Positions 24,643-62,766 of a stretch of DNA of 64,000 nucleotides are shown here, piece by piece. Position 1 is the stretch's first letter; every line of letters begins with the position of its first letter. The stretch is from Podarcis filfolensis (Eukaryota). The stretch lies in assembly GCA_964270895.1 (NCBI GenBank), contig OZ185439.1; one strand, 5' to 3'. The translations under genes were made by a program, and so were the position numbers. The notes beneath the pieces were generated by a model. It saw nothing but the letters and a program-made list of their open reading frames with translations. It had not been told where the DNA came from and searched no databases.

Positions 24643-24795
24643 ATGTTCGGTTCTGATAACAAACCTTTAGGAGAAGGAGACCTGCGGAAATTACTTAAAC
24701 TTTATCGCACAGAGATCGCCATGGCAGTCGACGATGTCTTCCCATTGCTCCACGGACTGGCAGATCATGACATTGTCACGGAAAAGATGTTCAAG
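24643..24795 (+). CDS. AIRE: AIRE exon, HSR/CARD part 1
   Basis: MFGSDNK...TEKMFK|gtgaga; an upstream in-frame ATG at 24625 is also possible. Confidence 0.93.
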
Positions 24796-60000: not shown

Positions 60001-62766
60001 TATGCCATCTGTTGGCTAAAGTAAAAAAAAGAAGAAGTTTGTTGAAACGGTAGAGTGAGAGGGTTTTTTTATCTGTGGTGTTGCTAGTACACCACCTTGT
60101 GAGCACAATGGGCCCTGAATGGTGGTTTTAAAAGACTTTAACAAAGGATTTTCAGTTGGCAGGCATATCATAAAATATTTTCAACAACCACATATACACC
60201 TGTGTGCAGTAACAACTTAAAACTAACTTGGTTTGTTTTTGCTGCAACAGATAACTTGTAGAAGTTATCTTTGGTTTATGTAGAGATCATTGAAGGTATC
60301 CAATTAATAAGTCAATATCCACTTGGTATCTTCCTGTTTTCTCAAGTCTGGCAAAACAGAAGTGTAGGAAGCTGGCAAACAGGTAATATTTCTTGGACCC
60401 TGAAAGCATCACATCTTGCTGTGCTAGGTGTGTAGACAAAGGTGTCCTTGTAAAATTACTCACCACGGACGGACTACCAGTAGTAGCACTATACAGTCAT
60501 GGCTAACATTTCAGCTTCTAAGTAAAGAACATTTTTGAATGTCTTCATTTTATATTTTCTCCCTTTATGCATTGCACACATGAAGAAGAGCTTGTTTCTT
60601 CAGGCTGCTTTGCCTGTTTTCTTGATCAACCTTCCCCTTCCCACACCCATATTTTTATACTACTACTACTACTACTACTACAGGCTTGTCTGGAAGTCTC
60701 CTATGTGCGCTGAAGGAGAAAGGGGATAGAAAACTGAGCTGGTGAGGGCCAAAACAAGTCCACTGGGAAACAAGGGGAAGCCGTCACCATGTTTAGGAGA
60801 AATTGGGATTTGTAGAAGAAGAAGAAAATATATTTAAGGAACAAACACACAAACTCCCAAAAGCCCAATGAGGACTGAGCATGCAGAGCAGCTGCACCAT
60901 GTTGAGCATCAGGTGGAAAAGAAAAATTGAAAAGAGGGAGGGATAGTGGAATGCCTTGTCTGAGAGCCTTAGAGCAGCGGTAGGCAACGTAGTGCCCTCC
61001 AATCGTTGGGACTATAACTTCCATGACTCAAAACCATTGGCTATGTTGGTTGGGGCTGATGGGAGTTACGAGTCCAACATTTGGAGGCCACAGAAGGGCT
61101 GGAGGACCGACCTCTGGCTCACAAGCCAGGCCTCTCCATTTGGCCTCCCAGTCCATTTTGGGAAGCCACACTCACTTGCCCTACACCTGATGTCATACAG
61201 GTGGGGCTTCAAAGAAACAATTGGGAGATTAAAGTGGGCTTCCAATTTATCCTTTGCTGGAACAAGGCATGCTCCCAGCTGCCCACCATTCTTCTCTTTG
61301 TTTGCCCCCACACACTGCCACCAGCAGCAGTAGTGGGGGTGGGGAGGGATAAAGGGAAGCATGAAGTTATTCTTTCCTCTTTGCTTTCCCTGCTGCTGCC
61401 AGCGTGGCAAATGCATGAAAGAAGCTGCTTATTTCTTAAAACGCAGGCTTCTTTCTCGTGCTTCCCACAGCAGCAGCAGGAGAAGCTTAGGAACCTTGCA
61501 ACAGATTTTGACAGGTGGGTGGGATAATAATGACACCCTGTGATTGACAAGTGGGCAGCCCCACCTACCTGTCTGATTTGGCACTTGAAGATGCTACTGG
61601 AACTGTTCAAGAGGCAAGTCACTGCTCAGTTTAAAGCAGTAGTTTCAGTTTAAAGTTAATGAACCTGTGCTCATGACACGGGCATAGCCCATTAAGGCTC
61701 CCAATCCGGCCTGTCAGCAAATTGCCAATGGAAGAAGACATCTGTCTTTTCTTTCATTGACAGTTCACTGTGTTTCTGTACTGGGTGTTGAGAAAGGGAT
61801 GGATTGGTTGAATTAAGGTAAAGGTAAAGGGACCCGTGACCATTAGGTCCAGTCGTGGCCGACTCTGGGGTTGCGGTGCTCATCTCGCTTTATTGGCCAA
61901 GGGAGCCGGCATACAGCTTCCAGGTCATGTGGCCAGCATGACTAAGCCGCTTCTGGCAAACCAGAGCAGCGCACAGAAATGCCATTTACCTTCCTGCCAG
62001 AGCAGTACCTATTTATCTACTTGCACTTGCATGCTTTCGAACTGCTAGGTTGGCAGGAGCAGGGACCGAGCAACGGGAGCTCACTCCGTCATGGGGATTC
62101 GAACCGCCAACCTTCTGATCGGCAAGTCCTAGGCTCTGTGGTTTAACCCACAGCGCCACCCGTATCCTTTTTTGAATTAGGGTTGAATTAGGGTATGAAA
62201 ATTATATTGAACCAGATATAAAGGAGGAAAAGGTTTCATGGGATAGCAGATATTTTCCTTCAGCATTTCCTCACACAAATATATGATCAGATTCCGAGTA
62301 AGAGACAGAGAACAATATTGTTTAAAGTACAGCATACATTTATATTGATAGTACATTAACCGACATGCATCCTATGAAATCTGAATAAATCAATTAATAA
62401 ATTGATTTTGGTGGTGGCTCTGCATCTGTAGAATGACCTTTCTACTAAGGTGAGTCTTGCCACCTTATTATATTCATATGGATACCAGGTACAAACTCAG
62501 CATTTTTGTCAGGCTATTTATGAATCTTAGTACTGCTTTAATGTTTTTGTTGATTATGTTTTGTACCTCCTTATTCTGAAGTAAATATTAATTTTTTTGG
62601 AGATGATCAAGACTGAAATGTCTTAATGCATAAATAGACAAATGAAATGTGTAGATGCCCATTTAGATTGGTGCATTGTCTACACTCAATCTAGTAAAAG
62701 TGTTCACAATTTGTTTACCTTATTTTTCACTGGGGAAGGTCGTGCTGGCTCAGGTAGCATGCCATC
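56997..62766 (-). CDS. SP140-like nuclear body protein, 3' half (PHD + bromodomain); 5' part probably lies beyond the right edge
   Basis: Exons 62719-62766, 59900-60015, 59215-59308, 57952-58023, 57690-57836 and 56997-57080. PHD CDVCMEDGSDICCSSCNKSFHLSCHVP/WKCTFC; bromodomain CEFLLLK, PMWLKRIKEKL, DMRLMF and EFEKNFREAF match SP140/SP110 C-termini. Linker exons between 62719 and 60015 are unresolved. Confidence 0.9.
57690..57836 (-). CDS. SP140-like bromodomain exon 2
   Basis: NPMWLKRIKEKL...DMRLMFSN. Confidence 0.93.
57952..58023 (-). CDS. SP140-like bromodomain exon 1
   Basis: TCEFLLLKTWCEPEGAVFADEPVT. Confidence 0.92.
59215..59308 (-). CDS. SP140-like PHD C-terminal exon
   Basis: FWKCTFCK...; donor gtgggt. 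Confidence 0.85.
59900..60015 (-). CDS. SP140-like PHD exon
   Basis: 116 nt, phase 0-2, PHD Cys/His pattern. Confidence 0.93.
61816..62171 (-). mobile_element. Sauria SINE, full length
   Basis: tRNA-like head, ACCTTT tail, 8-bp TSD TTGAATTA. Confidence 0.9.
62719..62766 (-). CDS. SP140-like post-SAND 48-nt exon
   Basis: DGMLPEPARPSPVKNK; same size and phase as 43299-43346. Confidence 0.6.

Follow-up and report, generated by a model that had tools for sequence, protein, structure and literature searches.

The 64,000-nucleotide stretch analysed here, referred to below as the window, comes from the lizard Podarcis filfolensis (contig OZ185439.1, assembly GCA_964270895.1) and carries AIRE next to genes of the SP100/SP140 type. 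Thymic self-tolerance depends centrally on AIRE, a gene whose origin falls together with that of adaptive immunity in jawed vertebrates. Read from the left, the window contains SCLY (selenocysteine lyase) on the minus strand, an intronless open reading frame (ORF) of 292 amino acids and AIRE on the plus strand, and two further genes on the minus strand, a SAND-only gene (gene B) and an SP140-like PHD-bromodomain gene (gene C). The window does not contain a single N. Exons were searched individually and the continuity of reading frames was read directly on the DNA. Overall, we consider it rather likely that the window represents a real, contiguous cluster of paralogues, in which the AIRE and SP families go back to a local duplication older than the divergence of cartilaginous from bony vertebrates, and of which an SP140-type neighbour of AIRE has been retained in several lineages.

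The coding region of AIRE extends from 24643 to 37840 on the plus strand and consists of about 13 exon blocks identified by tblastn, with the stop codon at 37838-37840. The first six blocks lie at 24643-24795, 25618-25794, 26274-26444, 27200-27277, 27636-27761 and 32571-32686, and the later ones at 33196-33324, 33909-34064, 34476-34595, 36016-36120, 37282-37350 and 37739-37837; one further block falls at around 28-29 kb, its placement being unsure. In tblastn searches, these blocks are matched in the same order by the AIRE proteins of gecko, P. lilfordi, wombat and Bos, and the last conserved C-terminal exon reaches the stop. The blocks are 91-100% identical to P. lilfordi AIRE, and exon 2 is 98% identical to its counterpart in Podarcis muralis. 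The HSR/CARD region is encoded by exons 1 and 2 (24643-25794), with a Pfam HSR match in exon 1 (24643-24795; 1.2e-11) and matches of a custom HSR profile in both exons (2.9e-21 and 5.3e-27); the same profile finds no other HSR exon in the window. The top match of the PHD1 exon (32571-32686) is the solved structure of human AIRE PHD1 (1xwh; 3.8e-21), so that by sequence this domain is predicted to be of the AIRE type, the class that reads H3K4me0. The PHD2 exon at 34476-34595 is identified by PHD as well as tblastn matches. The gene at 24643-37840 is confirmed as an AIRE orthologue. It resembles human and mouse AIRE in its HSR/CARD, a SAND remnant, PHD1, PHD2, the conserved C-terminal exon and a similar exon number, and the human and lizard PHD1 domains match almost residue for residue.

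The SAND domain is a point of difference from the human and mouse proteins. A custom profile detects its C-terminal half alone (27606-27782; 7e-08), and there is no Pfam SAND among the precomputed matches listed for squamate AIRE proteins. The N-terminal 'LPVSCGAVEGILIK' half is present in the AIRE of turtle, alligator, echidna and caecilian, and undetectable in that of the lizard (27200-27782) and the gecko (locus positions 14765-15013).

AIRE and gene B are arranged tail-to-tail. The initial annotation had placed the end of AIRE at 37840 and the stop of a SAND gene on the opposite strand at 39629, about 1.8 kb away, and exon mapping bears this out: the two genes are 1789 bp apart from stop to stop, and the spacer between the stop codons (37841-39628) measures 1788 bp and contains no N. 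The first poly(A) signals in the spacer are found at 38256 on the plus strand and at 39198/39163 on the minus strand. A repeat resembling a short interspersed nuclear element (SINE) occurs in two copies that are 88% identical over 270 bp, one (36802-37066) in the AIRE intron between the exons at 36016-36120 and 37282-37350, and the other (38604-38872, or about 38.6-38.87 kb) in the spacer.

Gene B occupies 39629-52452 on the minus strand. Mapping of its annotated orthologues from the lacertids P. muralis and Zootoca vivipara gives nine exons and the same stop as previously proposed (39629-39631). Exons 1-5 lie at 52452-52384, 47426-47322, 46858-46790, 46331-46221 (SAND a) and 44285-44136 (SAND b), and exons 6-9 at 43370-43296, 41205-41149, 40766 to about 40218 (Ser/Pro repeats) and 39928-39632. 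An alternative model of the 3′ end, in which SAND exon b (phase 0) is spliced directly to 40766 and the frame stops at 40607, was ruled out because the lacertid orthologues include the exons at 43370-43296 and 41205-41149 and a terminal exon ending at 39632. Outside the repeats, the exons are only about 90% identical to those of P. muralis. Exon 8 consists mostly of 24-nt tandem arrays: one of 11.2 copies (40291-40560) codes for PPDSPQAS repeats, and a tandem repeat search finds a second at 40665-40744. The number of repeats varies between the window and the P. muralis and Zootoca proteins. In both arrays, every frame is open on either strand.

The SAND domain of gene B is of the SP type. SAND a and SAND b join in frame and have AG/GT borders; the exon at 44136-44285 matches Pfam SAND (3.7e-17) and the SAND structures of SP100-B and SP140 (about 1e-9), and the domain scores 80 bits with SP140, 75 with SP100 and 26 with GMEB1. 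In a tree of SAND sequences comprising ten AIRE domains, gene B and shark SP-like domains, a branch supported at 100/99 separates the ten AIRE domains from gene B and the shark SP-like domains. A profile search of the window shows no HSR exon for gene B on the minus strand, and the annotated lacertid orthologues have Pfam SAND as their sole domain. In the place of a PHD-bromodomain module there are Ser/Pro repeats followed by a coiled-coil-like tail. Since gene B combines an SP-type SAND with the lack of HSR, PHD and bromodomain, it is a SAND-only derivative of the SP family and no canonical member of it. It was considered whether gene B could be an alternative 3′ module of gene C, so that there would be one gene rather than two; against this, gene B has a CpG island of its own (52.0-53.4 kb), and two species have a separate annotation for it.

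Gene C, of which the window holds the 3′ half (56997-60015), lies 5′ of gene B on the same strand, and the tandem arrangement of a SAND gene and an SP140-like PHD-bromodomain gene proposed in the initial annotation is thus found. Its PHD exon at 60015-59900 is followed by an exon at 59308 to about 59215 and by the bromodomain exons at 58023-57952, 57836-57690 and 57080-56997 (stop included). The PHD and bromodomain exons are bordered by AG/GT and agree in phase, and on the DNA no stop interrupts the frame between the PHD exon and the terminal stop codon. The bromodomain is recognised by Pfam (7.1e-9), and the matches among solved structures in the PDB are SP100 and SP140, at about 28 bits per exon against the human domains, reflecting low identity. 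In having a C-terminal PHD followed by a bromodomain, gene C resembles human SP140 and SP100C (2q37.1), as does its gecko orthologue in carrying HSR and SAND; it differs in being linked to AIRE, the human genes being unlinked, and in that the window contains only its 3′ half.

Extra HSR or SAND exons of genes B and C were not found, either by tblastn with 109-138 HSR proteins or with custom HSR, SAND, PHD and bromodomain profiles, and nothing recognisable lies at position 62766, where the cluster had initially been taken to end. That the window lacks an HSR or SAND exon of gene C would be in keeping with gene C being the PHD-bromodomain end of a TIF1-type gene (TRIM24/33/66) outside the SP family; in addition, the PHD exon by itself does not separate SP100 from TRIM24 and TRIM33, and the lone exon scores slightly better against the latter two than against SP100. 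However, SP100 is the best single-domain match of the bromodomain, the bromodomain exons align to shark SP140-like proteins, with which they have the PMWL motif and the C-terminal tail in common, and the gecko orthologue carries both HSR and SAND. On the strength of the gecko domains and the shark alignments, a TIF1-type identity of gene C was rejected, and we regard it as very improbable.

AIRE and gene C, the latter taken as an SP140-like gene, have a structural feature in common. The AIRE PHD1 exon and the gene C PHD exon were both said to measure 116 nt with phase 0 to 2, and this is what the DNA shows, with AG/GT borders in either case, so that gene C agrees with AIRE in the size and phase of this exon. 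The 116-nt, phase 0-2 PHD1 exon of AIRE is found in seven species (lizard, gecko, elephant shark, stork, turtle, alligator and echidna), and the PHD exon of an SP140-like gene in the elephant shark is likewise 116 nt with phase 0-2; in medaka, the AIRE PHD1 exon measures 122 nt. The exon is an old common feature of the SP-AIRE family rather than specific to this locus. Its occurrence in AIRE and SP140-like genes back to the shark fits an origin by duplication.

The linkage of AIRE to an SP-like gene is not limited to the lacertid lineage, since it is found in a gecko, in the elephant shark and, according to a preprint, in Xenopus. In the gecko Paroedura picta, a 291-amino-acid ORF and AIRE are followed, after 3.7 kb without N, by a minus-strand gene of 570 amino acids with HSR, SAND and PHD, arranged tail-to-tail with AIRE; the last exons of this gene are collinear with the bromodomain exons of gene C. 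Between AIRE and the gene C orthologue of the gecko there is nothing resembling gene B, so that the gecko locus lacks gene B together with about 19 kb of surrounding sequence. The gecko also bears on whether a chimeric join between 37.9 and 39.6 kb might have brought unlinked genes together in the lizard assembly. A SINE-like copy does lie within the spacer, but the window is free of N, the independent gecko assembly has the same tail-to-tail arrangement of AIRE and an SP-like gene across an interval without N, and two further lacertid genomes carry an annotated gene B; such an artefact is extremely improbable. The lizard locus therefore appears to be contiguous at 37.9-39.6 kb, judging by the absence of N and the parallel gecko assembly.

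In the elephant shark (MU249842.1), an SP-type gene, XP_007904586 (P0136; 10001-19902), precedes the true AIRE, with which it shares the strand in a head-to-tail arrangement; 5.4 kb without N separate the two. The SP-type gene encodes HSR, two SANDs, PHD and bromodomain, and its top solved relatives are human SP100 and SP140, for the PHD-bromodomain (115/114 bits) and SAND (64/63 bits), and likewise for the CARD. Its public name, 'autoimmune regulator isoform X1', is misleading; the true AIRE is the next gene, from 25331. Exons 1 and 2 of the latter are 75% identical to catshark AIRE, and its PHD1 is 95% identical to that of wombat AIRE. The shark locus is like that of the lizard in that an SP100/SP140-type gene directly adjoins AIRE, and unlike it in that both genes are on the same strand and the SP-like gene is upstream and contains two SANDs. 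The adjacency, the identities and coordinates of the genes and the phases of the exons are matters of direct observation in lizard, gecko and shark.

In Xenopus tropicalis, sp110 has been described as the 'immediate upstream neighbor' of aire, with ankmy1 21 genes off (preprint, doi 10.64898/2026.03.27.714371). The same study, which presents Novabrowse, is inconsistent on the location of X. tropicalis aire, with chromosome 8 (126.4 Mb) in the main text and chromosome 5 in Supplemental Figure 1. The frog locus resembles the lizard one in having an SP-family gene as immediate neighbour of aire and the human-2q37.3 gene ankmy1 nearby; the difference is that the preprint mentions the pair in passing as a source of orthologue confusion, without evolutionary claim, orientation or spacing (doi 10.64898/2026.03.27.714371).

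Taken together, an SP140-type neighbour of AIRE in the shark, in an amphibian (second-hand) and in two distant squamates, along with the shared domain order and intron phase, makes local duplication the best explanation, and the adjacency of AIRE and SP genes is probably ancestral to jawed vertebrates. Several points weigh against this. In stork, turtle, alligator, echidna and medaka, custom profiles find no exon of SP type closer than 10 kb to AIRE, so the adjacency would have been loosened or lost in several lineages. The orientation differs, being head-to-tail in the shark and tail-to-tail in squamates, and this lack of conservation calls for at least one inversion. For Xenopus, the adjacency is known second-hand, the orientation is not given, and the paper has two chromosome numbers for aire. 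On the SP side, the SAND tree is made up of gene B and shark domains. Finally, custom HSR and SAND profiles find no gene C exon in 60016-64000, which places the 5′ half of gene C outside the window; any HSR and SAND exons that it may have would lie past 64000.

Some of these points would also fit a scenario in which a 2q37-like region held AIRE and SP-like genes in only loose linkage, the tight pairing came about by an inversion or deletion specific to squamates, and the adjacencies in shark and frog were separate events. The orientation unlike that of the shark speaks for it, and so do stork, turtle and alligator, in which the 10 kb following AIRE contain no SP-like exon, the alligator having a UCH-domain gene there instead. 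These sauropsid negatives, however, span 10 kb only and include assembly gaps. In turtle, alligator, echidna and medaka, the domain exons of AIRE itself are the only ones within 10 kb either side; in the stork a gap of 500 N begins 0.46 kb past AIRE, and in the turtle the end of the contig is reached about 10.6 kb past the flank that was retrieved, which makes these negatives weak. Moreover, as SP-like genes are a handful among about 20,000, an estimate from gene counts makes an SP neighbour of AIRE in three distant lineages very unlikely unless it was inherited. We consider this scenario of separately arisen adjacencies unlikely. In the alligator, the UCH-domain (ubiquitin hydrolase) gene lies tail-to-tail with AIRE, 9.5 kb downstream (locus positions 31326-31821), a position occupied in squamates by the SP140-like gene.

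Under the preferred reading, inherited adjacency, AIRE and the SP100/SP140 family would be the products of a local (tandem) duplication that predates the divergence of cartilaginous and bony vertebrates, with an SP140-type gene kept beside AIRE in several lineages thereafter. In squamates, inversion of one partner may have produced the tail-to-tail layout, and in the lacertid line the SAND-only gene B, with its Ser/Pro repeats, coiled-coil tail and own CpG island, would have been added between AIRE and the SP140-like gene; indeed, gene B looks like a later addition. In mammals, AIRE would have come to lie on another chromosome than the SP100/110/140 cluster. That there was one founding duplication and an inversion is inferred, as is when and in which direction the genes became separated in mammals. 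The proposal in the initial annotation of an ancestral tandem cluster is therefore retained in part: the linkage in gecko, shark and Xenopus and the shared PHD exon speak for it, whereas the tail-to-tail layout with two genes is not the ancestral one, the pair in the shark running head-to-tail. Nor does gene B look like an original part of the cluster: HSR, PHD and bromodomain are missing from it, and the gecko has no such gene between AIRE and gene C.

The human positions give some indication of which gene moved. SCLY and ANKMY1 lie at human 2q37.3, and human AIRE is found on chromosome 21. The SP100 family has been placed at human 2q37.1 (PMC4548144). Together, these positions make AIRE likelier to be the gene that moved. 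A more far-reaching proposal, to which we would give about even weight, is that the AIRE/SP140-like pair is the footprint of the founding duplication that created AIRE in stem jawed vertebrates, that chondrichthyans, amphibians and squamates have kept the two genes side by side for over 400 million years, and that AIRE, not the SP genes, moved in mammals from a 2q37-like region. Shared regulatory sequence might be behind the long retention of the pair.

The SP-AIRE family and its common domains are well established (PMC8248984). It is important to point out that the genes themselves are already annotated and that SP-AIRE homology is textbook knowledge; the gain lies in evolutionary context and not in a new mechanism. 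Within the literature open to searching, no explicit claim of an ancestral AIRE-SP cluster or synteny was found, only the passing remark on Xenopus. If true, an AIRE-SP140 cluster in sharks, frogs and lizards would provide a model for the birth of AIRE via local duplication of an innate-immunity chromatin-reader gene, and would frame the question of when and how AIRE left a 2q37-like region in the mammalian line. The cluster would also serve as a synteny anchor that tells true AIRE from SP-like look-alikes, a confusion that is real, as the elephant-shark 'AIRE isoform X1' and a newt case in the Xenopus preprint illustrate.

The surroundings of AIRE in the lizard differ from those in human and mouse. 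The neighbours of the lizard gene are SCLY, a sauropsid-only ORF and SP-like genes; human AIRE, in contrast, lies between DNMT3L and PFKL at 21q22.3. The 5′ part of SCLY is found at 1885-5678 on the minus strand, and the gene continues past the left end of the window. Its exon at 1888-2115 matches selenocysteine lyase of rat (9e-23) and human (7e-22), and cysteine desulfurases only at 6e-06 or weaker (solved structures); an exon of the Aminotran_5 gene upstream of stork AIRE shares 58% identity with the 5′ exon at 5457-5678. In the stork, the order of SCLY, a 282-amino-acid ORF and AIRE is as in the lizard.

The 292-amino-acid ORF (16732-17610, plus strand) lies between SCLY and AIRE and is useful as a synteny marker. 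Its counterparts upstream of AIRE are 91% identical in the gecko (291 amino acids; locus positions 5214-6089) and 64% identical in the stork (282 amino acids; locus positions 3458-4306). The ORF has no Pfam match, and its relatives are labelled 'uncharacterized protein' across squamates, turtles, birds and alligator. Mammals are absent from the 63 matches, and the other named matches are invertebrates only (starfish, mantis shrimp, amphioxus and a bivalve). It looks like a domesticated or horizontally spread gene.

Between SCLY and a CpG island at 14.2-15.8 kb, a long terminal repeat (LTR) element is inserted at about 7.4-13.4 kb. Two identical ORFs of 73 amino acids (7472-7693 and 12959-13180), about 5.5 kb apart, bracket ORFs similar to retroviral pol and gag. 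Retroelement sequence is also seen at the AIRE locus of the turtle Emydura macquarii, where a 780-amino-acid 'autoimmune regulator' model (10001-22386) has reverse-transcriptase Pfam matches and the AIRE exons start from about 22387; this model is probably fused to an upstream retroelement.

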